In this document: piece by piece, positions 2,891-51,685 of the stretch
Layout: each line of letters begins with the position of its first letter
Numbering within the stretch: position 1 is the stretch's first letter
Origin: Caecitellus pseudoparvulus
Lineage: Eukaryota; Protista; Bigyra: Bicosoecida
Length of the DNA stretch: 64,000 bases
Direction: 5' to 3'
Assembly: GCA_965644315.1 (NCBI GenBank)
Contig: CBFFRQ010000069.1
Coordinates: forward strand, 1,364,001 to 1,428,000
The notes under the pieces: generated by a model
What the model saw: the letters and a program-made list of their open reading frames with translations, nothing else
Database searches by the model: none
What the model was told of the DNA's origin: nothing
Position numbers and translations under genes: made by a program

Positions 2891-5800
2891 ATGCACAGTC
2901 GCCAGGGTCCCCGAAGGCTGAATGTGGATGAGGACTCAGACGACAGCCTTTCCGACTCTTTCGCTGGGGGGCAGGGCTCAGCAGCCGCGGCAGAGGAAAC
3001 GACGTCACGTGGCCGCACCAGCCCAGACGCTTCCCAGCGCCCTTCGCCTCTACACTTGGCGTCGTACCTGTGGAAGAAATCCAGTGGCCGTTCCTTCTTT
3101 GGGCGCCGCAATTGGTTACGGCGCTGGTTTGAACTGGACCCCTTTGAGCCTTGTCTATGGTATGCGCCGTCTCCCGATCGTGAAGAAGGAGTGAGTTTGT
3201 CCTGCGGAAGTTGCATGCGATCAATCATCCTGGCACGCTTGTGCCTTTTGCCTCACAGAAAGCGATTCCACTGCTTGGTGCGAAAATTGCAACGTGTTCA
3301 CACAGAAAACATGACCATTGCTTCCAAATATCAAGCCCCCTTGATGGGGAGCAAGCGGTCCCGACCACTTGGCTCCTGAGAGCTGAAGATGACAGCACCC
3401 TGTGCACCTGGATGGCAGCGCTTAGTGGGGTGCGCTCCCTGTGGACGTTGCACGGCGAGCCTGACGCACTGACACTGGATCCACATGTCCATCCAGTTGC
3501 CCAGCCAGCACTGCTCATGCAGCTCACGACTGCAGCGCACGCAGCAGCAGCTCGGCTGGCACGGGCAGCCGATGAAAGTGCACCGAAACCCAGAGCTGAA
3601 AGAGCCGATAGCCTTGACAGCGACGATAGCTTGGCGATTGAAACAAAAGGCGCGTCTTCGCATGCTGTTGATGAAGATGAAGCTGCTCTTCCTGGTCCAG
3701 GCGTGCCCGGAGAGGCTGTGCACTTGCACGCTGAGGGAGAGGACCAGGCTGCGTTGCCCAGCCCGATTGCATCTTCACAGGAGTGCACGGGCACGCCCAC
3801 TGGCGGCGTTCAAACTCCTGCTCTAGAAGAAGGCTCTGATCGTTCACTGCCACCCAGCCCACCGAGCCCGAGAGCAGCTCCAAGCACTGGTCCTGTTCAA
3901 CCTGACCAGGCCACTGAGCAGCCGATGCCTGGTGGCAACCCGTTCTCCCCTGCCCCCGAGCGAGAGCCGTCAGTGCCTGGTGGCAACCCGTTCTCCCCTG
4001 CCCCCGAGCGAGAGCCGTCAGTGCCTGGTGGCAACCCGTTCTCCCCTGCCCCCGAGCGAGAGCCGTCAGTGCCTGGTGGCAACCCGTTCTCCCCTGCCCC
4101 CGAGCGAGAGCCGTCAGTGCCTGGTGGCAACCCGTTCTCCCCTGCCCCCGAGCGAGAGCCGTCAGTGCCTGGTGGCAACCCGTTCTCCCCTGCCCCCGAG
4201 CGAGAGCCGTCAGTGCCTGGTGGCAACCCGTTCTCCCCTGCCCCCGAGCGAGAGCCGTCAGTGCCTGGTGGCAACCCGTTCTCATCCTCCCAAGCTCCAA
4301 CGATTCAAGTACGGAGCGACGCCACAGATAGCTTTAGTGCAGAAGACTTGACAAGAGTGGCCTCTGAGGCTCCACAGCGACCCAATCACAGTGGAGTGCA
4401 ACCCGAAGGAAGCTATCCTGCCACTGAAGTGCAAGTTCCCGTCGAGGACGCACGGTCTCACAGTTCACGCGGTTCACGGGAAGAAGTGGCTGATCGCTCA
4501 GAACCCGAGAGCGTTCGGAGCTTTTCATTTGAACTTGAGGAGTCGCGCGGAGAGGCTTCGAGTGGTTGTCCTGATGCCGGTGAAACGGCCAGCAGTATTG
4601 TTGTGCAACCAGTGAGCGCCGCTTACAGCCGACACAATAGGCAACGAACAGCTTTTTCTGAGTCCTCCACCTCCTCTGGGACTGATTCCCACGCAAAGGT
4701 TTTGAGCGACGGCCAAGCGGGTGAATCGAAGAGTCCTGTGCTGATGAGCCTTGAGGAGGGGGACAAAACAAGGGCAGCAGGTCACGTTGTCAGGGCCTTG
4801 CGCACAAGGGCAGCTTTGAGGGCACTGGCTGAAGCAGGGCAGCACGAAGCCTCTTGTTTGCGGGCTGATGTGTTGACTGAGGAGGACGCACGGCCAACAA
4901 GCAGCGCTCGTGACGCTCCTCGCTTTTCTGCCACCTCCACCGGCAGCCCCATTTCCCCAACCAGCGAATGCGACGCTGAGCAGCCCTCCTCATTCTTGTC
5001 ACAACTTGAAGAGGGTCTTGTTAGTCTCAAGGCTTTCCACGACTCCACGGCAGAGCTTGATCTTGTACCTCCACTATCTACCGCCTCGCAGGCACCCATC
5101 GTGCATGCTGGGCATGCTCCCAGCGAAGTGCCGCCTGTGGGCGATATTATCCAGCCCATAGAGGGATTCGTGCGGCCCAACGCTGCCCAGGCTACGGCTG
5201 AAGAAAAAGTTCTTGAGGCAGCGTCCACATTCCCTTCGGAGAAGGGTGACTGCGAGGAGCCTACCGCAAGAGTTGTGACGACATCGAGCGCAGCTTCTCT
5301 GTCAGTCTTTGAAGGGGTTCGTGCTGATGTGGAGCCAAGTCATCGACTTCCTCTGTGCCACACTGCAGTCCCCACCCGGTCAGCGCACACGATGAATGGA
5401 GGCAGTGGGTCGTTTCAGCAGAGTGTGGGCGCGGAGGGCGGTGTGGTGGGGGTGTCTGGGGAGAGTGTGGGCGCGGAGGGCGGTGTGGTGGGGGAGTCTG
5501 GGGAGAGTGTGGGCGCGGAGGGCGGTGTGGTGGGGGTGTCTGGGGAGAGTGTGGGCGCGGAGGGCGGTGTGGTGGGGGTGTCTGGGGAGAGTGTGGGCGC
5601 GGAGGGCGGTGTGGTGGGGGTGTCTGGGGAGAGTGTGGGCGCGGAGGGCGGTGTGGTGGGGGTGTCTGGGGAGAGTGTGGGTGCGGAGGGCGGTGTGGTG
5701 GGGGTGTCTGGGGAGAGTGTGGGCGCGGAGGGCGGTGTGGTGGGGGTGTCTGGGGAGAGTGTGGGCGCGGAGGGCGGTGTGGTGGGGGTGTCTGGGGAGA

Positions 5801-6711
5801 GTGTGGGCGCGGAGGGCGGTGTGGTGGGGGTGTCTGGGGAGAGTGTGGGTGCGGAGGGCGGTGTGGTGGGGGTGTCTGGGGAGAGTGTGGGCGCGGAGGG
5901 CGGTGTGGTGGGGGTGTCTGGGGAGAGTGTGGGCGCGGAGGGCGGTGTGGTGGGGGTGTCTGGGGAGAGTGTGGGCGCGGAGGGCGGTGTGGTGGGGGTG
6001 TCTGGGGAGAGTGTGGGCGCGGAGGGCGGTGTGGTGGGGGTGTCTGGGGAGAGTGTGGGCGCGGAGGGCGGTGTGGTGGGGGTGTCTGGGGAGAGTGTGG
6101 GCGCGGAGGGCGGTGTGGTGGGGGTGTCTGGGGAGAGTGTGGGCGCGGAGGGCGGTGTGGTGGGGGTGTCTGGGGAGAGTGTGGGTGCGGAGGGCGGTGT
6201 GGTGGGGGTGTCTGGGGAGAGTGTGGGCGCGGAGGGCGGTGTGGTGGGGGTGTCTGGGGAGAGTGTGGGTGCGGAGGGCGGTGTGGTGGGGGTGTCTGGG
6301 GAGAGTGTGGGCGCGGAGGGCGGTGTGGTGGGGGTGTCTGGGGAGAGTGTGGGCGCGGAGGGCGGTGTGGTGGGGGTGTCTGGGGAGAGTGTGGGCGCGG
6401 AGGGCGGTAGGGCTAGTTGTGAAGGTGGCAAGGCTCTTCGCAAACCAGTAGGTTCAGCAGCCTCTCTAAGAGTTCATTCTCGTGTACCAGGCCTTAATGG
6501 AGAAGTCAACCGAGAGAGATTGCACACTGCTAGTGACTCTGAGACAGCGAGTGTTCGTCCATCAGAGTCTGTTCGGTCCACTTTGGGCGAGTTTCTCGCT
6601 TTTGCATGCGAGGAATCCTCCGACAGTGACGAGGATGATTGGGGTTTGCCCGTGCATGAACCTATGCCGCGGGAAACTCTAGCCGCTCTACACAAGGTGT
6701 TGCATGGGTGA
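2891..6711 (+). CDS. PH-domain protein with long disordered tail containing NPF repeats and a Gly/Val/Glu/Ser repeat
   Basis: PH domain SYLWKKSSGRSFFGRRNWLRRWFEL...|KAIPLLGAKI...HCFQI...WLLRAEDDSTLCTWMAAL joined across intron 3191-3258 (GTGAGT..CACAG). Start ATG at 2891 is uncertain. Confidence 0.8.
3928..4283 (+). repeat. Coding tandem repeat, 48-bp unit, 7 identical copies plus a partial copy (PGGNPFSPAPEREPSV)
   Basis: Unit CCTGGTGGCAACCCGTTCTCCCCTGCCCCCGAGCGAGAGCCGTCAGTG repeated head-to-tail with no spacers; gives 8 NPF tripeptides. Confidence 0.97.
5422..6408 (+). repeat. Coding G-rich minisatellite, 42-bp unit x 23.5 (SVGAEGGVVGVSGE)
   Basis: Unit AGTGTGGGCGCGGAGGGCGGTGTGGTGGGGGTGTCTGGGGAG. 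Only variants seen: GGC>GGT in copies 7, 11, 19, 21 and GTG>GAG in copy 2. Confidence 0.97.
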
Positions 6712-6760
6712 GTAAGCGATAAACATTTTGATGGGTTACATTGTGAAGGAATGTCAAGCA

Positions 6761-8593
6761 TCACTCATCGATTTCGTCTGCTCCGTCAAGTGCGGCGTAC
6801 ACGTCGGGTTGAGTTTTGAATGCTGCCTCGTAGAGCTTAGTGCTGGCTGCCAAGTCCACCACACCACACACTTCGCGGATGGAGTGCATGGAAAGCTGGG
6901 GCACCCCAACATCAACCGTTGGCATGCCAAGGGAGGCTGCGAGGATGGGGCCAATAGTGGTTCCGCAGCCCATGTCCTGCCGGACGACAAAGTGCTGCAG
7001 TTTCACACCAGCCGCAACAGCGAATTGCTTGAATGCATGGGTTGTCACAAGGTTGGTGGCGTAGCGCTGGTTCACGTTGTGCTTGATAACAACGCCAGCA
7101 TTCATGGCCGGGCGGTGGCACCGCTCGTGCTTGCCAGGGTAGTTGGGGTGAACAGAGTGGGCCATATCAGCAGAAACCAGGAGAGACTTGCGCACGCTCT
7201 GTCGTACAGCAGCTGCGTCGTCGCCGTTCAGCGCGCTGACGATTGTGGCCATGAGGGAGCCGTCAGCCCCTGAGCCAGATTGGGAGCCCACCTCCTCGTG
7301 GTCGAATAGGGCAGCCACTGAGACATGCTTGGCGGCAGCGATGGCCTCGTCCGAAGCGGACGCCTTCAAAAGCCCTTCAATGGCACCAAAGCAAGAAGCC
7401 AGGTTGTCCAGGCGAGGGGCGAAGACGAACTCGTTGTATACGCCTCCCAGGGCGCACGGCTGCACGTCAAAGAGAGCCAGCTCCATGTCTACAATGTCTC
7501 CGACGCTGACTTTCAGCTCCTCGGCCAACGCACCAAGCAAGGCAGAGTGGTGCAGGTCGGCAGCGCCAGGGCCGCCTGCATCGCCAGCTGCGGTTGGAGC
7601 CGGTGCCGGTGCGTTCAGGCTGTCCGCCGCAGCCGTGGCGAGAATGGGGGCCAGATGTTCTTCCTTGTTCACCTTGAATGCCGTGCGCTCCTCTGCAGAG
7701 GTCAGGTGGATGGCCAGGTTGGAAATGCGCAGCAGGGGGCGGTTGATCTTGACGAGGCGAGTCTTGAATGTGTCGCCCACTTTCACGATGACACGCCCAG
7801 CTACGGAGAGGTCCCGGTCGAACCAAGTGTGCCACAGTCCGCCACCGTATGTCTGCACCCCAACAGTCCTGCACAAGGAGGTGGGAGAACTGGGGTGAGG
7901 GCAAGCGTCTTACATTCCTTGTGCGCAAGTGGCACGTACAGGTAGCCCTCCTTTGTCTGCTTGGAGGCAGGTTTGACCTTCAGACACGGCGAGTCTGTGT
8001 GTCCTGCGACGACTGCAATCCCGTTCCCAGGTTCAAACCCCCCACCGATGGTGAATGCCACCAAAGAGGATTGGTTGCGGGTCAGGAAGTACCTGCGGGG
8101 GCGCCGGCAGCGCGCGGTTCGCTTGCGGGATTTGGCCGCAACCACGCCAACAGGACACGCACTTGCCGCCAGGCTTCAGCGACCATGGCTGCCCTTCCTT
8201 GAGGCGCTCGAATCCTGGAACGTAGATAATGGGTGGGGTTTCTCACCCATCTCAAGCTGCCGGCCAAGCCCCTTGCTCACCTGCAGCCTCGAAGCGCTTC
8301 TGGGCTTCCAGCGTGGCATGAAAGACACTCGACGAGCCATCGTTGAACGCCAAGAAGTCCTGGGCGATGGAAACTTCCGTCTCGGTGGGGAAAGACACTT
8401 TGGGCTCTGAATCTGAGGCAGCAGCCATGTTGCGGCGAGGGGTTGTTGTAGCTGGCACGAAAGAGGCAGCTGCTGAGAAAGCTGCTGCTGGCTTGGAGAG
8501 GGTCCGGCTTGGGCTCCCGAGCACAGCTGGCGTGGGGCAGACAACTGGAAGAGCTCTACGTGCAAGTCGGTGGAGACGAATGACACGTGCCAT
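6761..8593 (-). CDS. DNPEP: Aspartyl aminopeptidase (peptidase M18) with N-terminal presequence-like extension
   Basis: M18 motifs SVFHAT, YFLTRNQSSLVAF, GHTDSPCLKVKP, VQTYGGGLWHTWFDRDL, RLDN, FDHEEVGSQS, SADMAH, CGTTIGP, LSMHSIRE. Three short introns near 8280-8215, 8162-8093 and 7939-7869. Confidence 0.95.
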
Positions 8594-40048: not shown

Positions 40049-43000
40049 TCACGGGGCTGCTTTCTTCACCTTGCTGTCTACAAGCTTGCCCAAAGCATGC
40101 AAGCGCAGTAAATGAACTGCCCGCCGCGTCGCGCCTGCTTTTCGCTGGTCCACTGACCGGCAGTATTGCAACATCTCCTGGATGACATCCGCAGGGCTGC
40201 CGGGAAAGGCCACCGCAAGCAGCTCCTCCAATTCCAGCTCCCCAGAACCGTCAGCATCGACAGCCTTGAAGAGGGACTTTGCCACTGTCGGCAGCAGGCC
40301 AGAGAACATGTCTGAAGCCATGTACTCCTCCAGGTCCACAGCACCTGAGCCGTCAGTGTCGATTTCGTCGAACATTCGCTTCAGGGCCAGGACCCGATCA
40401 CGGTCATGGCCACCAAAAGCGTGGGGCTGGGAGAAGGATGAAGCTGTGGTTCTGGCCAGTCGCAGCTGCGCTTGCTCCGAAGCCGAGCGCCTGGACAGTG
40501 CCGAACGTTGGACAGCTGACGCCTTGCGTGATTTAGGTTCTAACACAGTGCTCATGTCCTTGTGCTTGTCCACGGTGTCTTGCCGCAGTGCGCAGAGCTC
40601 AGCGGCTTCCAGAGCAGGTTTGCCTCCAGGTCTTGAAGAGCTGCGCTCATCCTGCCATGCTGCTTGGGGCGAAGGCGAAGTGCTCGCAGCGTGACCACTA
40701 CAGTCGCTCGGGTGGGCGAACCCCCTTTGCTGCCGGGACTTGGAAGCAGCCAGCAGTGCGCAAAGCCTGGCTTCTTCTTGGCGAGCCAGCCGTGCGCTAC
40801 TCGGACGCATCGCACGCTCAGAACTCTCACCTGTGGCATGTCTTGGGCCTCCACCTAGCGACAGCTCCAATAGGGGCGCCTGAGAGGTCACTGGCTTCTG
40901 CTCAGATGATGTCCATGTCTGGCCCTGCATCTTCGGGTGCGCTGAGCGGGGCCGCAGTCGCGCCCTGGCCCGCTGACGAGATCCTTCTTGCTTTGAAGGA
41001 CCCGTACGCTCATGATGGCCCCCGCCCGTCGGCTTTCTCCGGAGATTTGAGCTGGAAGCCACTGGCGCTGAGGAAGGCTTTCGTTGAGGGGAGGACATCT
41101 GAACTTCTTGTCGGGACAGGACACTCGGGCGGAACGAGTCAGGCTCCGCTCGATCCAAGCTCGCAACCTTTGTTCGGCGGCGCAGTTGGACTTGGTGTGC
41201 TTTGGCTACCAGCCCAAAATTCTTGTACTTTCCGACCAGCGAGCGAGGCATGCGCGCATGTCTGTGCTTTCCAGCCTCCGCGCTCAACTGCTCGAGGAAG
41301 CTCGGGCGCTCAAGGCCTTCGAAAGCGGCAGGGAATCGCGCCTGTGATTCAGCCGACTTCGCCGATAGAGTCTCTGTATCCTCACCGTTCGAGCTCAGGT
41401 TGAGGTCAATGAGCTTCCTTTGCTCGGAGTCTGTGGTTGAACGAAGGAGGGCGGCCTCAGAGGCGGCTGCTTGGCGCTCGGACTCGAGCAAGTGAGCCTT
41501 CCTCTCAACGGCCCGCTGGCCAGCCACTTCCAGAGCGCGAGCAACATTGCTCTCACCCACTACCTTGTGGTCCCCTGGCCAACTGTCTCTCTGTCGCTCC
41601 AGCTCCGTGAGTATACCTCCATGATCGTCGAGTGTGAGTCTGTGCAGTGACATGGACCCAGCGCCAGTCCCTTTCGGAGAAGGCTCTTGACCTACACATG
41701 GCAGCGGCCGGGCAACTGGAGTTGGCCTGGGTGGATCCTTCAAGCAAGCTTCGGCTGCCTCTCCTGGAGTGTGGCGTCCCGCGCACACCGCATCGCAGGC
41801 TGCCCGGGTGGACTGCTGATTCGCAGCGCGGCTGGTTCGATCTGGCTGGCTCTGGCTCACGGACCTATTCACAGCAAGCACGGCTGAAGCGCCCGAAACA
41901 CGTTCGTCTTGCCCTTCCTGTACTCCTGTTGCCAAGCTGTCGATCGAAGAAGTTGAGCTGCGCAGCTCCCGCATCACTTCTTGTGCTTCGCTGCGACGGG
42001 CCTGCAAGAGGGTCGCGAGGCTTGGATCAAAGCTCCAGGGGCACTGCGCTTTGGACAGTGGCTTGATGCCGCCCGGGTTGCCAGTGATGCTTTCAGCCTC
42101 TGGAAGGTCATGATACACTCTCTCACACAGCACCGCAAGTGGGGCACCGACGATGCTCCACAAGCGAACGGAGAGATCTTGGCTCGTTGATGCAATGTCG
42201 GGGACCGGGGAGGTGTGAATGAAGGACAGGCTCAGGATGCTGCCTGAGTGTGCAGTCCATGCTGCGACAGGCGCCGCTCCTGGCAGCACACGACTGTCGG
42301 CCCAAGCCTGTGCTGAGACTTGTCTGCCTGGAAGCACAGGCGAGAACCCAGGATACTCCGCTCCTACCTTCAACGAAAACCAGGCAGGGTGCCTTGCATC
42401 CAAGTCACTGATGCTACTGGACAGCAGGACCTCGGGAACGCGCAGCCGCTCCCCAGTCGCGACTGGCACGCTGGGCGAAACTGGCCGGGTGGCTTTGGCA
42501 CCAAGCCAAGCCTCTGCCTGCCGCTGCCTCAGTGCCTTTTTGTCAAGTGAGGGATCATATGCTGCAGGTGCAGTGCTCTGGAGCACTCGCCTGCGCAAGA
42601 GGTGAGGGTCGTATCCAGCTTGGCTGGCTGGGCACTGGCTGGGCGGCACCGGCGAGCAGGGTCCCCGAACAACAGCATCGGTGAGATCCCACCACTTGAT
42701 CATCCCCTGAGCATCTCCAGTCACAATCCAGGCTCGGGGCAAGTTTTGCGAAGCTGCAGCTTGTGCCGAGTTCAGAATTTGCTGTGCAGAGGACCCCGGT
42801 GCGCCGTACAGGTGTCCATGTGATGCAGGAAGCGTGCTTTTGTCTGCACACATTACCATGTGTTCACGTGTAAACCCTGCGACCAGCACGTCCATGGCGA
42901 GAATCGGCACAGGTACAGTGCTCGGTTGGCAAAATGGGCGCTGCGCGGGCTGGCCAGGCTGTAGGGGGGGGGGCGGCGCTCCTCCCCTCCTCCCCTCATT

Positions 43001-46000
43001 CACGACACGCAAGAACAAACGCCCCGATCCTGGCACGTGAGGTGTGATGAATATGCTCAAACCACCACTACCATCAGCTGAGAAGAGAATGGGAAGGTTT
43101 TCTTGGGGCTGTGGCCCTTTCAGCACCGAGACTTCCCCGCCACACTCCACTTCGTGGTGCAGGTGCAACGAGCAGAAATCCCACATGCGTATGCTGCCAG
43201 ACACATCTGCAGAACACATGACGCTGAACGGGTGCAGAAGGCAGACGCTCGACATATCTGCGTCGTGAGAGTTGACAATACTCCGGAGCTGTGGCATTTC
43301 ATCTGGCTTGGAGTCGCTCCAGATTCGCAAAGAGCGGTCCCAGCTTGCTGACAGCACCACCGCATCTCCCCCTGCATGGCACATGGAGACAACGTCATCA
43401 GAGTGTCCCTGCCTGGGGGCCTTTAGCAAGTAACCGGAAAATGCGTTCAAGACAACAATGTTTCCGTCTGCATCCCCCACGAAGAGTTTGCGCTGCCGGT
43501 TGTCTAGGCACATGCTCACGATGAGATCGGGTGTGACTGCGTCCACAGCTCGGAGCAGGTTACCAGAAGATGCATCGTAGATGTTTATCGAGCTTCCTGC
43601 AGCGACGATGAGAATGTTCAACTCTCGCGAAAACTGCACTGCAACTGGGTACGGGTCTGCTGCAGTCTGGGCCACGGGAACTAGCAGGTGGTGCTTCAGA
43701 CCTGCCGCGACCAACGTCCCATGCGGCTCTTGGACGACAAAGTTCCGGATGGAGAAGGGAGGGGCATTTGCACGGAAGCACCCACTTTGCGTCGCCGTCC
43801 CTGCTGTCGTGTCAGCGACGTTCCACACCTTGAACAGCCCGGATTCGTCCAGCGTCACAACCTGCGGCGCCACCTGTCCCAGCACATCCACTGCCACCAA
43901 CCTTGATCGTCCAGGCACCACCTGCAGAAGTGCTACACAGGAAGCAGGGTCCCAAAGCCACAATCCCTCCGTGCCTCCGCCGCTGACCACTAAGTCGCGG
44001 TTGGGCAACGCTTTCATGAATCTCACAGCTTCCAGGTGCTTGCAGAACGAATGTGACAGCTTTGGCACCACCGGGAGACGGTCATCTGCATACTTGAGCA
44101 GGTGCACGTTGCTGTCCAGCCCACCCACAGCCATCAAGCTGTGCCTTGGCACATCAGCAAAGCAGGAGACATCCTCGGCGTGAAGGGCCAGTTCACACAG
44201 TTTCTCCCGCTGCAGCACGTCCCAAACGGATATGATCGGGCTGTTCGGGTGAGCAATGAAGAGAGCATTCGCAGAGTCACTCCAAGCCATGACGTGCACA
44301 GCCATAAGGAGGTGGACGTGCCCTCTCGCTTCGAACCTTCGCGTTCCCCAGAACGTCAGGGTCATGTCTCCGTTCGCAACGGCAAGCAAGTGTTGGGTGT
44401 CCTTCGGGCCCATCGAGCTCCATGCAATTGCTCTGGAGCACCGTGGCTTGGGTCGACAGTACTCAACGAAATGCAAGGCATCTCCAGCAGATACTTGTTC
44501 GGGCCTTCGTGGTCGCGCGTAGTCCGGTACGCCACTGTCTGCCGTGTCCCCTTCTCTGATCTCACCCATAGCGCGCACACATGGCCCACCATCAGGGTCA
44601 TAGAAGGGAACTGAGCCCCCACCTACCCCTGGTCGTGCGTACAGTCCAGCCTGTGGCGGTGGGTAGTCTGCCTCACTGTCCAACCTGGGCAGCGTTGGCA
44701 CATTGGCATGGCTGGAAGGCGTACCCTTGCCAGCAGGCAGACGCCTGTCCCTGGCCATGAGCAGCCGCCTACGAGCCTTCTGGGCTTCATAGTATGCGGA
44801 AGCTTCTTTCCTCTCTCTGGTGATGGCTGTAGCCCTGCGCTGCGCAGCTCTTGTGGCTGGCAGCTGCGGTGGTGCCGTAGCCCGCCACACGCTCGCTCGA
44901 ACTTTGTCCCCCTTCACTGCCTGAGCAGCATTTCCAACGGGAGACGGGACTTGCAGCACCCTGGATGTCTCGAGCAACATTCTCTCAGAAGCTGTCAGCT
45001 GCCCGCCCAATGCCGAGACCCTAGCAGCTGCTGACTGTACCTTCGCTCGCATGTCCCCCCGACGCTGCAAGGTGACAGTAGCACTTTCGTTTGAGCGCAC
45101 CTCCCCCAAGACACCCTCCTGGCCGGTTGAATGCCAAAGAAACTTGCTCCATCTGCTTCCTGTTCGCATGCCAGCGGTTGGCTGCCTACCCTCCAGTTCC
45201 CGTGCCTTGGCGCCTCCAACTGCGCCTCCAGAGACCACCTCGGCAGCTTCCAGCTTGTGTTGCGCATCCAAGTCTGAAGCTAGCTGGGGCGGACGCTTGG
45301 CTAGCCTGGTGGTGTAGCGTCTAGACCTATCCGACGCCACGATGACTGCAGCTCGTCTCCTCGATGCCGACACTGCACTGTGAGCTTTGCCGCCTCCAGG
45401 CATGGCTAGGGTGGCTTTGGCCCACTTGAGGGCTGCCTTTCGATGCACGTCAGCTTCCACTTGGCGCTGCCCAGCTGCAGTTTTTGCAAGCTGCATCTGA
45501 GCCCTTGCCTCCTCTGCCGCTGCTGCGTCCACAACTGCCCCGCGCTGCCGCGCAGCCCGGGACATGGCGGAACCGATCGCCAACGCCTGCACAAGTTGGA
45601 AGCCAGGACAGTGACAGCTATTCGGAGAGACAGGGGTGCAGCAGGCTCACCTTTTCCCGCATAGGAAGGCGGATGTGCACTCGCGCAAGGAGGCACAGAT
45701 CGTGGTTGTACACTTTCAGAACAGGGGACCCTGCCTCACAGACGCACAGCTGCTGCAGCTCAGGGAAGAACCGGATGCAGGTGACTGGGTCTTCAGGGTG
45801 AAACTCCGGGGGCAAGAAGCTCGTGTCCGCGTCTTCATACTGTCATAGCAATTCGTGCGGAAAACAGAGCTGGAGAGCTGCTGCAAGCGGGGGGCACGCG
45901 CTCGGAGGCTCACCTTGATCTGAGGGCCAGCTCCATTGCGTTGTGATGAAGCCAAGACGCCACTCTCGACGCAGAAACTAGTGAACTCGTCCCAATCAAC

Positions 46001-46294
46001 TGTCGCTGACCCATCAACATCAATGCGGCGGAACAGCTCAATCAACCCAACCATCACATCTTCTGCGGTTTGTCGCAGACGCGGCATTCTCGGGTGCTAT
46101 GCTGGGCGTTGCAGGTTGCGTTTCATACCGTTACTGGCACCGCCAGCTTCCACCATCTGGCTGATCACGCTGCAGAACTGCAGCAGAGACAAGCCATCAG
46201 ATTGTTTCTGGAGCTTCTTGTAGTTTATCCGGATGTTCGTGAGGGTCTTGCTGGTCAGCAACGTGCTTGTGTCCAGCGCCAGAGCAACTGCCAT
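40049..46294 (-). CDS. Large EF-hand / WD40-repeat protein (WDR49/WDR64/EFCAB8-like)
   Basis: N-terminal EF-hand LFRRIDVDGSATVDWDEF; many WD repeats (SASWDRSLRIW, SADVSGSIRMWD, TGDAQGMIKWWD); C-terminal EF pair DTDGSGAVDLEE and DADGSGELELEE. Introns 46063-46128, 45840-45913, 45587-45650. Confidence 0.8.
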
Positions 46295-46695: not shown

Positions 46696-49503
46696 ATGAG
46701 TGAAAGTGCTTCCCTGGCGGAGAGTAGCGCACTGGATACCGGAACTGTGCGTTGAAGAGCGCCTGCAGCCAATTTGAGGCAGTGCACCGGACCCATTTGC
46801 CTTCCGCGTAGGTTGCCGAGTCCGTCGCTCCCGGGGACAGCGCAGTGCTGCCCAGCATTGCGGACGATGCTGCTTCTGTCTCGGACTATGACGAAGGCGA
46901 GGACACCGAAGAAGAGGCGCAAGGCATTGAGACGGTATGCACGGCTTCCCGCGCCGGGTCATGGCAACGCAGCGGAAACGCCGCCTCGCACACTGCATGC
47001 GTGTACTGTGCAGGGGCTCACGCAAAACCAAGGGCGCTTGCTGTACATGATCAGCTTGTACACGAGGCCAGCACGTTCGGGGCTGGAGAAGGAGGAGTGG
47101 GTTCGGAAGCAAGCCCTGCTTGTGCTCATCTACGAGGCAGTGGTGGCGCAGGTGCTGGACTACGACTATGCCCCTGCTAGTACCATCGTCAATGGGCACC
47201 GCCGGTACTTCAACAAGTCCCAGGAAGGCACCAGTGACGTGGACTTCCTTCGAGAGGAAGACATGCTCAATGGGCTAAAGCTGTCCAGCAAGTCCTACAC
47301 GCCCGTGACTTGCTACCAGGTGTCCGCAAAAGGCATGGCCTTGGTGAAGAAGATGCCAAAGGCCGACAAGGATGCTGTGCATGAGCTCGTCTATGCGCCA
47401 GGCACCCGTGAGCTGCTGCGGGTTGTCTTTCGACACGATGAGTACTTGCTGGTCGGCCCCGGTGGCTTCGAGCGCCCGTCATCGGTGACAGATTGTGAAG
47501 ACGTGTCATACGTGTCATCGGCATATATCCCACAGTGCCTGCGTTTTGGGGGCCGGCCAACACTGTCGAATGCCCACCGTGCTGGGGAGTGTGCCGTGTC
47601 CGTGTCAAACATTCGGGATGAGCTGGACGAAGTGCTCACACTGAACTCCGTGTCAATTGTTGTGGCCGAGTTCATACCCTTCGGTGCAAATCAAATTGTG
47701 CAGATGAACCACAACCTTGGTTCCACCGAGCGAGTGCAAGGGGGCTTCTTCACCGCCCTTGTTGATGACAACGCGGATGGCACAAAGTTCGAAGTTGCGC
47801 CGGGGCTGACCTCCGTGAACATCTTGGACTACACCCTGACCAAGCACATCAACTTCGAGGCTGACATCAAGCTGCCTGAAGACGATGGGATTGTGCAGGT
47901 GGAGACGTTCGGGGTGTCCGTCAATGCGGACGGGACGGCATTCTACGGCATGCAGGTGGAGGCGGTCATGGACCGGATCAAGGACAACATCTCCCTGGAT
48001 CACCTGTCCCGCCTGCTTGCAGATGTGCACACGGACAGCTCCTCCATTGTGGACTCGGTCGTCTCAGCATACCAGCGCCGGCTGTTGAACCTCATCTTCA
48101 ACGGGGACGCAGGCAACAGGGACAAGATGAACCTCATCATTGCCAACGAGATCACGCCTCACCTGACAGCTGAAGAGTACATGGACAAAGGGGAGTACGA
48201 GAACGAGCTGAAGCAGGTGCTCGGGGACACCCGGGCGGCGTTTGACATCTCAGAGCACGACACGCTCGTGTTTGGCGAGACTGGTCTGCTCATCGCAGGT
48301 CCCAACTCCAGACACCACGAGCCGCTGCTGTGCTCGTATCTGCAGTTCACATCCATGGATCTGTTTGTGCGCAACTACTGGAACCGCATGTTCTTGCTGC
48401 TGGACAACATGAAGGAGGTTCGCCGCCTCATCAATAACTACACCTCAGACCCCACCAGCCTCCCGAAGATCAGGCGCAGGCTGCAGCAGCTCTCTGACAA
48501 TGTGCGCCTGATGAACGAAGTACTGGGGTACCTGACAGAGTCATTGGAGTCGTGCGAGATCCCCCCTGAGCCGCTGGACGCCGCGGGCCGGGCACTGTAC
48601 GAACGGCTTCAAATCGCAGACCTGGCCGGGCAGCTCTCCATGAGAGTGCTGGACTTGAAGAAGAACATGGATGGGGCTGGAGCAGAGCTGCAGTTCTTGA
48701 AATCGATGGCAAGCATTGTTGCTGAGAACCAAGCAGCGAGCTTGGTGGAGAATCTGCGCTCCAACACCCGGCAGCTCATGCTGCTGCACGAGACCAACGA
48801 GAAGACCTCTGCTACGGTGGAGATCTTGCAGTACCTGGGCTCAGCGATGTTTGCGTTCGGCCTCATTGACAGGCTCATTGGCCCTGGTTGGAGCGTCTCG
48901 CAGTCCGAGTACGTGTTTGCGCGGTACCAAGACCCTGAAGTCTGGGACAAAGATCTCGTCCCAGGCGCGTGGCAGTCCTTCGTGAATGCCATGATTGTTG
49001 GCGCACCGACCATGTGGTTTTGGATTTCCCTTGCCATGTGGGCAGCAGTGCTGTATGCCACCAACCGCATGTTAACGCAGATGAAGTTCGTGTCCTTGGG
49101 CAAAATGACGGTCCGCATCCGCATCATGCAGCGTCTTGACCTGGAACGCTTCCACGCGTACGTTCAGACGAAGGTGACTGCCCTCGAGGAGAGGGACTTC
49201 CAAGAACGCAACAGCATCATTCGTGTGTCGTGGGAGGAGGTCGACAAGGAAGCATGGGGAGGCTCAGCACCATACATTGTCCTGGAGTACGACGCTGAGA
49301 CGCAGTACTTGCACTCCATTTCCATCAACTACAACCGCCGTGATGCCATCAAAAATCTAGCTCTCACCGCACCTGAGCTGCGCAACAAGCTTTGTGATGA
49401 AATGCTGGACGCACAGGTGTTCGAAGATGGCAACTACACCTTCCGGGAGGCGACAGCTGAAGACTTGGAGGAGTTTGGGGCGATGAAGCTGCAGATGGGC
49501 TGA
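46696..49503 (+). CDS. Uncharacterised membrane protein: winged-helix-like N-domain, CorA/DUF155-like helical stalk, 2 TM, soluble C-domain
   Basis: Clean 3-exon model (introns 46747-46811 and 46935-47013 both keep frame). Globular composition. wHTH-like FLREEDMLNGLKL..YQVSAKG. TMs ILQYLGSAMFAFGLIDRLIG and MWFWISLAMWAAVLYAT. Gene is well supported; the function is not. Confidence 0.75.
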
Positions 49504-49549: not shown

Positions 49550-51376
49550 CTACTTGCGTGAGGCCAGACGACGCCGACGGATGCCCAAGGTCTTCCTTGG
49601 GGCAGCCCCTTCCTTGGGCAGGTGAGAGAGTAAGGAGCTTGCTTTCGTGAAAGTGGGCTGCATCACGTTTGCTGCGGCAGGTGGCGGGGGGAGCATGGCC
49701 GCTCTCTTGCTTGGCTGGAAAAAGTCACCTTGACCGGTTGATGACGTGTCTGGAAGCTTGCTGACCATCCTGGCCGCTGCAGCAGCAGTGTCTGTGCGGC
49801 TGGTGCACACGTCACACGTCGGGAAGGCTGCCGAGGTGCACGATGGATGTGCTCGGAACGCACACTTGTCCCCGAAGTGCCTCCCGATGGCCACACGTCG
49901 GCAAGACGGCTCCAAGACATAGCTTTGCATCGCTTCAAATTCGTCCTGCACTTGCTCAGGTCGCCGCTTGGACAGGCGCGTTCTGGATGGCGCGTCAGCG
50001 CCAGCGTTTGCTGCTTGCTGAGCACGCCATTTGCACCTCCGCAGCTCTTGTGTGTCGGCGAATAGAAGGCAGTGAGAGGCTTTCCCGTCACGCCCAGCCC
50101 GGCCCGCCTCCTGGTAGTATGCGGCCAGGGATGTGGGGATGTTCCAGTGTGCCACCAAGCGCACAGTGGGGCAGTCAATGCCCATCCCAAACGCGATAGT
50201 GGCCACCATGGTGCAGGCCTTCCCAGAGCGCCAGTCCACGAGGGCTTCTCGCCTCTGCTTTGGGGTGATGCGGGCATTGAAGACAGCTGCCGAGATGCCC
50301 TCTGCCTTCAGCATGCCGGCGACGTTCAGAGTCTCGTCCACAGAAGAACAGTACACTATTGCGTGAGACGAGCTCCTTGCAGGAGCTGGCTTGAACATTT
50401 GCGGCACCACTCGCTTCTTCGGAGCTTTCACAGTGTCTTTAGCGTGCAGCAGGGATGTCGCAGATCGGAATGTTGTGCAAGCTGCTCCAGAGGGAGCTCC
50501 CAGGCTGGCCCACAGCTCAGATGCAGAGGGTTGGCGGGGGCGCTTCTCACCGCCAACAGCCGCACTGCCGTCAACCGTCGGCGGTGTCGGGAGGCCCAAA
50601 GCTTCACGAATGGCAGAAGCTAGAAACTGCAGCTTTGAGCGGTCGCCTGTAAAGTGCGTCTTGCCATATGCCACGGTGTACCGCAATTCAGGCCGATCCA
50701 CAGGGGCGCGAAGGACAATGGCAGCTTCGGGCGGAGGCAAAGTGGGAGCAGGCGGGGGGAGCGTCATGCCCAGCTGCTGACAAACAGCCTGGAGAACATA
50801 AGGGGTGGCTGTGGCTGTCAGTGCGAGCAGGGGCACTCCAGGCAAGCTGCTGCGCAGCCCCACTAACTTGGAGTACGAGGGTCTAAAGTCGTGACCCCAC
50901 TGGTTTATGCAGTGTGCCTCATCCACGACAAGGCGCAGCAGAAGACCCCGTTCAGCAAGGTCTGTGAGTAGCCGCATGCCAGTGTGCGACATTGCGCGCT
51001 CTGGAGAGCAAAGGACGACTCTTGTCTTCGGGGCTGCGCTCGCGAGGTCAACCAGGAGAGCACGCTCTGCGGCCTTGCCAATCTCGCTGTGCCAAGCAGC
51101 GGCAGGAACATTCCCAGTGGCTGAGAGGCGTCTTGCTTGATCGTCCATGAGGGCAATCAGAGGCGACAGGCACACTGTGACGCCCACGGCGGCCATGAGG
51201 CCAGGCAAAGCATACACAAGAGTTTTGCCGCCTCCAGTGGGCAGGCACACCATGGCATCCTTGCCAGACGCGGCCGCTTCTACGGCCTGGCGCTGGGCGT
51301 CAGACCGCCACGATGAATACCCAAACTTGGGCAACAATGCCTCCAGCTCTCCTGCCCGTTGGAGCTGTGCAGCCAT
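49550..51376 (-). CDS. RecQ-family DNA helicase (RECQ5-like core; no winged-helix or HRDC domain evident)
   Basis: [79 protein letters not shown], Zn site CRR..HFGD..CDVC. Confidence 0.95.
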
Positions 51377-51685
51377 GATGCGGCAGCTGCGTTTCAGCGT
51401 TTCGCGTGTGCATCGGCGGTCGGCTTTGAAGCGGGGAGCCCCAAAGCCCCGCGAGCCGGGCCGTCTGAAGCAAGCCTGGCTTAATGAAACAATAGTTTGC
51501 GAAGTCTTTCTGCTGGTGGCCACTGCCGACGCCGCTTGGTGAGCGCGCGGTGGAGTTCAAAGTGTCAGGTGGGGGGCTTTTGCCTGCCACGCAAAGGCTG
51601 GGACGTGGCTCGCACACTCTTGGCACGGAGGGTGCATTTGGACAGCAACTGAACACAATCGCGCATCAACGTGGGGCGGCCACAC

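Follow-up and report, generated by a model that had tools for sequence, protein, structure and literature searches.

The window analyzed here is a 64,000-nucleotide (nt) stretch of contig CBFFRQ010000069.1 from the bicosoecid protist Caecitellus pseudoparvulus. Its plus strand carries, at positions 46696 to 49503, a gene that an earlier note, made from the letters alone, had described as a winged-helix-like domain placed on a two-transmembrane (TM) body resembling CorA or DUF155. The gene is real, present in a single copy, probably composed of three exons, and not a chance open reading frame (ORF). Judging from structural models, its product has a CorA-like architecture and is probably a very remote relative of CorA, not a member of the CorA family; the body, assigned to the MJ1566 family, is a separate and very distant lineage with the CorA layout, unmatched by the CorA sequence model and missing the GxN selectivity motif. 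The likeliest reading, to which we give an even chance, is an oligomeric CorA-like membrane protein in which a cation or small ligand is sensed by the cytoplasmic domain, which then gates a pore lined by TM1, with the N-terminal MJ1567 module serving as a fixed regulatory subunit.

Structural resemblance to CorA-type channels

All searches and models used the uninterrupted frame as read from its ATG at 46867, whole or in part, and amino acids (aa) are numbered from that ATG. In the AlphaFold2 model of the full-length protein (predicted local distance difference test, pLDDT, 85; predicted template modelling score, pTM, 0.69), low confidence was limited to aa 1-48 and the loop between TM1 and TM2, and the model of the 245-640 domain reached a pLDDT of 86 and a pTM of 0.84. 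Foldseek searches against the PDB returned exclusively CorA and ZntB as top matches (whole model, E 1.8e-4; 245-640 domain, E 5.3e-5; probability 1.0), in alignments of about 280-350 columns covering the full CorA chain; among the fold matches listed, CorA chains were almost the sole ones extending into the alpha/beta part. CorA-type channels were likewise the best structural matches of two structure aligners, and the closest remaining folds in the ESM Atlas were unnamed bacterial families (TM-score 0.64-0.67), MJ0711_N (0.55) and CorA (0.45). Furthermore, hhalign aligned the body with eight CorA sequences, drawn from genomes in which the MJ1566/MJ1567 family also occurs, over 318 collinear columns spanning the whole of CorA (P 1.4e-4), with TM1 placed on TM1. 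The CorA layout asserted in the earlier note was thus borne out by both the Foldseek and the hhalign comparisons; prokaryotic homologues were found as well, and no characterized family matched over the full length. The accompanying likeness to DUF155/RMD1 gained no support: the PF02582 model gave no match in the Pfam scans, and no such protein appeared among the fold matches listed.

At the level of sequence families, the CorA model PF01544 gave no match to the whole protein at E<=1 or to its two halves at E<=10. The same model matched other loci in this genome and in five prokaryotic genomes holding the family, never this gene. The tripeptide GMN was absent, as the earlier note had stated, and the sole G-x-N triplets (aa 273 and aa 478) are remote from the membrane helices; hhalign set 'WSV' opposite the 'YGM' of CorA, with the Asn absent. 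The PF01544 matches elsewhere in the genome mean that this gene is not the organism's only CorA-fold protein: at least one ordinary CorA/Mrs2-type protein is also encoded (67.7 bits, inside a 928-codon open frame), the match sites being G000:C32:122302-122613 and G000:C68:934993-935400, of which the second match is weak.

Domain organization of the protein

All nine motifs quoted in the earlier note were located in one frame ending at 49503, with starts at nt 47017, 47125, 47158, 47218, 47245, 47314, 47497, 48595 and 48796. Homologues align over aa 49 to about 868, and every part described below lies on the plus strand. The MJ1567-type module (aa 49-244, 47011..47598) was delimited by the precomputed PF27231 assignment on an identical protein, by phmmer and by alignment A4, and consists of a winged-helix-like core (about aa 53-161) followed by a beta-rich piece. 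For most prokaryotic members this piece is a zinc ribbon of the CxxC..CxxC type; the cysteines are lost in eukaryotes, including the protein studied here, and in Methanocaldococcus. The suggestion that the 'DYAP' segment of the N-domain resembles small archaeal proteins was upheld: alignment A4 shows an invariant D52, with conservation of at least 90% at Y53, A54 and P55.

Conservation reaches its maximum in the subsequent alpha/beta domain (aa 245-480, 47599..48306), which was delineated from the structure models and contains the invariant or nearly invariant polar residues E268, N275, Q344, E346, D378, R382, D386, D390, S391, Q403, R418, K420, E447 and Q450. It is followed by a helical bundle (aa 481-582, 48307..48612; helices 481-523, 531-562 and 572-581) equivalent to the cytoplasmic helices of CorA, and by a stalk (aa 583-670, 48613..48876) formed by one 88-residue helix that runs into TM1 and carries the nearly invariant D596. 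Hydropathy confirmed the two C-terminal membrane segments noted before (aa 649-669 and aa 705-730). At the end of TM1 (about aa 649-669, nt 48811-48873), 'DRxxGxxW' stands in place of GMN; the sequence here is 'DRLIGPGW' and the family consensus 'DRxTGxW', and G660 and G672, within or beside TM1, are nearly invariant. TM2 (about aa 705-730, 48979..49056) is preceded by a variable low-confidence loop (aa 671-704), and the membrane helices and this loop are less conserved than the alpha/beta domain. The soluble tail that the earlier note saw after the membrane helices is indeed present, with about 134 residues, and forms a C-terminal alpha+beta domain (aa 745-878, 49099..49500) that Asgard, Planctomycetota, Wallbacteria and metagenomic members possess and Methanocaldococcus lacks. 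The winged-helix assignment of the N-module and a Bet v 1/START-like (helix-grip) assignment of the C-terminal domain are leads only.

Split and fused forms in three domains of life

The MJ1567 and MJ1566 families are named after adjacent genes of Methanocaldococcus jannaschii, and in prokaryotes the two halves of our protein also occur as separate proteins. Proteins about 590 aa long align with the query solely over aa 245-852. A phmmer map of the query N-module and body against the ORFs of the fetched loci gave E 1e-7 to 1e-24 for the N-module against small archaeal proteins and E 1e-12 to 1e-69 for the body against large ones. In Methanocaldococcus, Hermod- and Promethearchaeota and a metagenomic contig, a small gene (176-211 aa) lies directly upstream of a large one (447-597 aa), and the same small-then-large pair occurs in Coatesbacteria; for Methanocaldococcaceae, it was seen in four loci. 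The pair is adjacent or overlapping in Hermodarchaeota and Methanocaldococcus, and in the metagenomic contig L002 the 201-aa gene (PF27231) ends 1 nt before the 597-aa gene (PF27230). In L005, a contig of an uncultured archaeon closely related to L002, the small (1058-1663) and large (5001-6797) genes stand 3.3 kb apart, with several small unannotated ORFs between. The large proteins of Methanocaldococcus stop right after TM2, without the C-terminal domain. Fused forms were found in a Planctomycetota metagenome-assembled genome, in Wallbacteria, in Riflebacteria and in every eukaryotic member examined; the fusion is not eukaryote-specific.

These neighborhoods bore out the proposal that the gene is a fusion of prokaryotic neighbor genes, given that separately encoded N-module and CorA-like body genes adjoin in Methanocaldococcus, Asgard archaea and Coatesbacteria. 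Beyond the pair itself, no common gene was seen in the neighborhoods of Wallbacteria, Riflebacteria, the metagenomic archaeal contig, Hermodarchaeota and Methanocaldococcus. The split and fused forms make a textbook 'Rosetta stone' case, and the two archaeal proteins are therefore predicted to form a complex; the small thermophilic Methanocaldococcus pair is an obvious structure target. In a quick maximum-likelihood tree, the eukaryotic sequences formed one clade (SH-aLRT 100) with a Riflebacteria fused protein and a metagenomic protein at its base, and the Asgard pairs were not sister to it. Because the tree came from a short search and has long branches, we draw no firm origin from it. One protein inside the eukaryotic clade, P0127 (L030:6001-8373; 47% identical), sits on a contig that looks bacterial, with genes 2-26 nt apart that include LysM and peptidase M74 (murein endopeptidase) genes and an acyl-CoA dehydrogenase gene, and may reflect transfer between domains of life.

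A catalogued family of conserved proteins

A word search returned 709 matches, the top ones with E=0, and an exhaustive search returned 1637 cluster representatives at E<=1e-3; the Caecitellus genome holds one copy. PF27231 and PF27230 are precomputed on P0001, a 100% identical protein, and on all 120 homologues listed of the 709. ESM Atlas labels, which also stand on the nearest Atlas clusters, name the N-terminal ~200 aa MJ1567 (PF27231) and the body MJ1566_N (PF27230) after Pfam 38.1, and Atlas clusters show the same fused two-domain architecture in oomycetes and chlorophytes. An older Pfam release without these two models gave no match above noise for the whole protein, its halves or the archaeal pair, and searches of NCBIfam, PADLOC and PDB sequences with the same queries likewise gave nothing above noise. 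Literature searches on MJ1566, MJ1567, PF27230, PF27231 and the UniProt names found no paper in the library consulted, and a wider one yielded nothing pertinent. The family and its fused form are thus already catalogued by Pfam 38.1 and the ESM Atlas, without a function, and this gene is an ordinary orthologue. Accordingly, the earlier note's word 'undescribed' fails for both domains and their fusion and stands with respect to function, for which we found neither a listing nor a paper. We came across no description of the CorA-like architecture lacking GxN, of the split and fused pattern in three domains of life, of the lost zinc ribbon, or of any function.

The named eukaryotic members include oomycetes, Tribonema, Mallomonas, chlorophytes, a record labelled Symbiodinium and the ichthyosporean Chromosphaera. 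Identity amounts to 55-75% across stramenopile classes and falls to 38% for an ichthyosporean. This stramenopile identity, together with the lack of a PADLOC match, suggests a housekeeping role rather than defense, with very strong purifying selection and a single copy in eukaryotes. Several homologues (P0010, P0018, P0052, P0124 and others) bear the name 'WD repeat-containing protein 35' or WDR35, which is evidently wrong, as the model contains no WD40 repeat; the label, used by JGI and for Achlya, has spread through JGI and one NCBI record and is likely an annotation error propagated from one mis-named record. Additional domains occur in some members: the homologue P0104 (933 aa) carries ubiquitin-family domains (PF00240, PF11976), with LRGG directly before the acidic tail as in cleavable ubiquitin-fusion genes, chlorophyte members have an ANKRD40-type ubiquitin-like domain, and another Atlas cluster has an added SprT-like domain.

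Proposed mechanism and alternative explanations

In CorA structures, acidic residues of the cytoplasmic domain and stalk form Mg2+ sensor sites, and the stalk helices move to gate the pore. We propose a sensory role for the protein because conservation peaks in its alpha/beta domain, with invariant acidic and polar residues there and D596 on the stalk, as in the Mg2+ sites of CorA. In this scheme, the protein would assemble in the membrane into a CorA-like ring with all soluble parts in the cytoplasm, and the conserved, acid-rich alpha/beta domain would sense a ligand or cation. The stalk helices would then pass the signal on, gating a TM1-lined pore or producing another membrane response. The MJ1567 module, with its winged-helix-like part and degenerate zinc ribbon, would serve as a permanently attached regulatory subunit and not as a DNA-binding factor. 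A bolder version of this reading, which we regard as tentative and rather doubtful, would make MJ1566/MJ1567 a third ancient branch of the CorA fold, present in archaea (Asgard among them), bacteria and many protists and comprising a gated pore with a non-GxN filter and a dedicated winged-helix/zinc-ribbon subunit that was fused several times.

Several observations weigh against a gated CorA-like pore. The hhalign probability was only 52%, and the alpha/beta domain alone gave no signal; rigid superposition on CorA was poor (TM-score 0.25-0.33, root-mean-square deviation 13-17 A), and profile searches against the PDB with alignments A1, A2 and A4 returned coiled-coil or chance matches only, without CorA. 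Moreover, the membrane helices rank low in conservation compared with most other parts, and the split archaeal forms lack the 'DRxTGxW' with which TM1 ends, a picture that fits an anchor as well as a pore. The ESMFold2 complex of the N-module with the 245-640 domain scored 0.02 against a mark of 0.34, speaking neither for nor against binding. A non-conducting protein fits the same data nearly as well, and we consider it quite possible: a membrane-anchored sensor, scaffold or enzyme whose TM helices only anchor and oligomerize, with the likeness to CorA reflecting ancestry and fold, not activity. The alpha/beta domain has about 14 invariant or nearly invariant polar residues, more than is usual for a plain regulatory domain, and this, with the weakly conserved membrane helices and loop and the absent selectivity motif, suits such a protein. 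However, the mechanical gating element of CorA, an unbroken 88-residue helix from stalk into TM1, is kept in the model, TM1 and its border hold the nearly invariant G660 and G672, and no enzyme family was matched by sequence or fold.

Two further explanations change the role of the small module and rate much lower. A membrane-tethered transcription regulator, in which the winged-helix module binds DNA under the control of the CorA-like sensing body, appears improbable to us. Weak language-model leads to archaeal helix-turn-helix (HTH) and PadR clusters (0.82) and the zinc ribbon added in prokaryotic members point in this direction. Nevertheless, HTH family profiles gave no sequence support, with one of 31 N-modules matching PadR at E 0.052; eukaryotes keep the module fused and highly conserved, although in their cells a protein with two membrane passes could reach DNA only at special membranes, and the strongly acidic eukaryotic N-terminal tail would repel DNA. 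Still less probable, to the point of being very unlikely, is that the prokaryotic pair is a conflict module of the toxin-antitoxin or abortive-infection kind, in which a small regulator accompanies a membrane-damaging effector that eukaryotes later domesticated. The overlapping or abutting genes for a small and a 2-TM protein, the existence of SAM-AMP-activated CorA-family effectors (PMC10600005), a weak feature lead to the SocA_Panacea antitoxin domain and the patchy bacterial distribution are all compatible with it. Yet PADLOC found no match, no defense genes were seen near the pair in the five loci inspected, the pair holds the same place within the locus in four Methanocaldococcaceae loci, and the eukaryotic members are single-copy and under very strong purifying selection.

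Few eukaryotic membrane proteins so conserved remain without any function. If the CorA-like sensing and gating proposed above is true, a new kind of gated pore or sensor would exist in methanogens, Asgard archaea, several bacterial phyla and many protists, whose carriers include algae and oomycete pathogens of plants and fish. If the third-branch version is true, it would constitute an unrecognized class of ion- or ligand-gated channels strongly constrained across eukaryotic supergroups. The value lies in the family rather than in the gene; because Pfam already lists the family, the finding is not unique to this genome.

Gene model and neighboring genes

An uninterrupted plus-strand frame extends from 46774 (TTG) to 49503, with its first ATG at 46867 and 878 codons from there. 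The earlier note placed the start at 46696; read as an unspliced frame this claim fails, given that the ATG there meets a TGA after 19 codons, and it stands if two short GT..AG introns are removed. From the sequence, we propose the gene model join(46696..46746, 46812..46934, 47014..49503), which would encode about 887 aa. Proposed exon 1 (46696..46746) comprises 17 codons from the ATG and is followed by the donor GTGCGT. Putative intron 1 (46747..46811; 65 nt, GT..AG, phase 0) holds the in-frame TGA at 46753 and ends at 46811 in a pyrimidine-rich TAG acceptor. Proposed exon 2 (46812..46934) has no ATG of its own and supplies 41 codons for an acidic Ser/Asp/Glu-rich tail ending in ..GIET, in a frame different from that read from 46867. 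Putative intron 2 (46935..47013; 79 nt, GTATGC..TGCAG, phase 0) has a length that is not a multiple of 3, and after its TGCAG acceptor the sequence GGG CTC ACG reads 'GLT'. Exon 3 (47014..49503) encodes the entire conserved protein, from 'GLTQNQ' to the stop codon at 49501-49503.

The three-exon model is favored because it restores the acidic tail, because its junctions are in phase 0, and because relatives corroborate the intron positions. Most eukaryotic homologues start with an acidic Ser/Asp/Glu tail that ends '..EDEDTG|LTENQ', and splicing brings back such a tail, ending 'ETG|LT'; read without splicing, the N-terminus that begins at 46867 is basic (+12/-1) and shows no conservation. L029, which encodes the closest relative (72% protein identity), shares this three-exon organization, both of its introns falling where ours are proposed: a similar exon 1 of 16 codons before GTACGT, an exon 2 ending '..DELET' before GTATGT, and CAG acceptors. 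The homologue P0107 retains an in-frame intron exactly at the position of intron 2. We had entertained a mitochondrial presequence for the basic unspliced N-terminus and dropped it, as that stretch is most likely intron read-through and the homologues have acidic tails. ORF callers take 46867-47013, which in our model is intron and upstream sequence, as a basic unconserved N-terminus. The same artefact appears in the homologues P0006, P0009, P0085 and P0121, whose unconserved N-termini end in 'QG', corresponding to a CAG|G acceptor. Since these 'QG' ends in database homologues mirror the acceptor, many deposited proteins of the MJ1566/MJ1567 family probably have wrong N-termini.

The gene is flanked by unrelated minus-strand genes, a long WD40 protein gene upstream (40049-46294) and a RecQ-type helicase gene downstream (49550-51523). 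The WD40 gene contains EF-hand ORF pieces and is probably spliced, so that introns occur in this genome; about 400 nt separate its 5' end from the ATG at 46696 and could be a shared divergent promoter.

Comparison with known systems

The CorA family has been termed '2-TM-GxN' (PMC6972854), and CorA-type channels are pentameric (PMC11919701). The order of parts in our protein is that of CorA, Mrs2, Alr1 and ZntB: a cytoplasmic alpha/beta domain, a helical bundle, a stalk helix continuous with TM1, a short loop and TM2. Unlike those channels, it has no PF01544 match and no GMN or GxN, its alpha/beta domain, with about 230 aa and 12 strands, exceeds theirs in size and is conserved much more strongly, and it has an additional module at the N-terminus and, after TM2, an additional C-terminal domain. 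Compared with the archaeal MJ1567/MJ1566 pair, it is one polypeptide, as in all eukaryotic members examined, with the zinc-ribbon cysteines lost (as also in Methanocaldococcus) and an acidic tail added; the C-terminal domain missing from Methanocaldococcus MJ1566 is present. The wing-end motif of MarR/PadR proteins that the earlier note had pointed out, 'Y-x-[VIL]-[ST]-x-x-G', does occur at aa 150-156, whereas the HTH membership it implied gained no sequence-profile support for any family, and the profile found nothing relevant among PDB sequences. The model furthermore places a beta-hairpin (aa 102-117) where the canonical winged helix has a helix, and MarR/PadR membership is not established.

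The CorA-family membrane effector of type III CRISPR systems, which is activated by SAM-AMP (PMC10600005, PMC12255297), offers a further parallel. In contrast to that effector, a recognizable CorA member encoded in CRISPR loci, the MJ1566 family is not recognizable as CorA by sequence, has no defense context and is conserved in eukaryotes. The likeness lies in the kind of mechanism, as the effector is a divergent CorA-fold protein that works as a ligand-gated membrane effector and not as a Mg2+ importer, which is the mode of action that we propose for the present protein.

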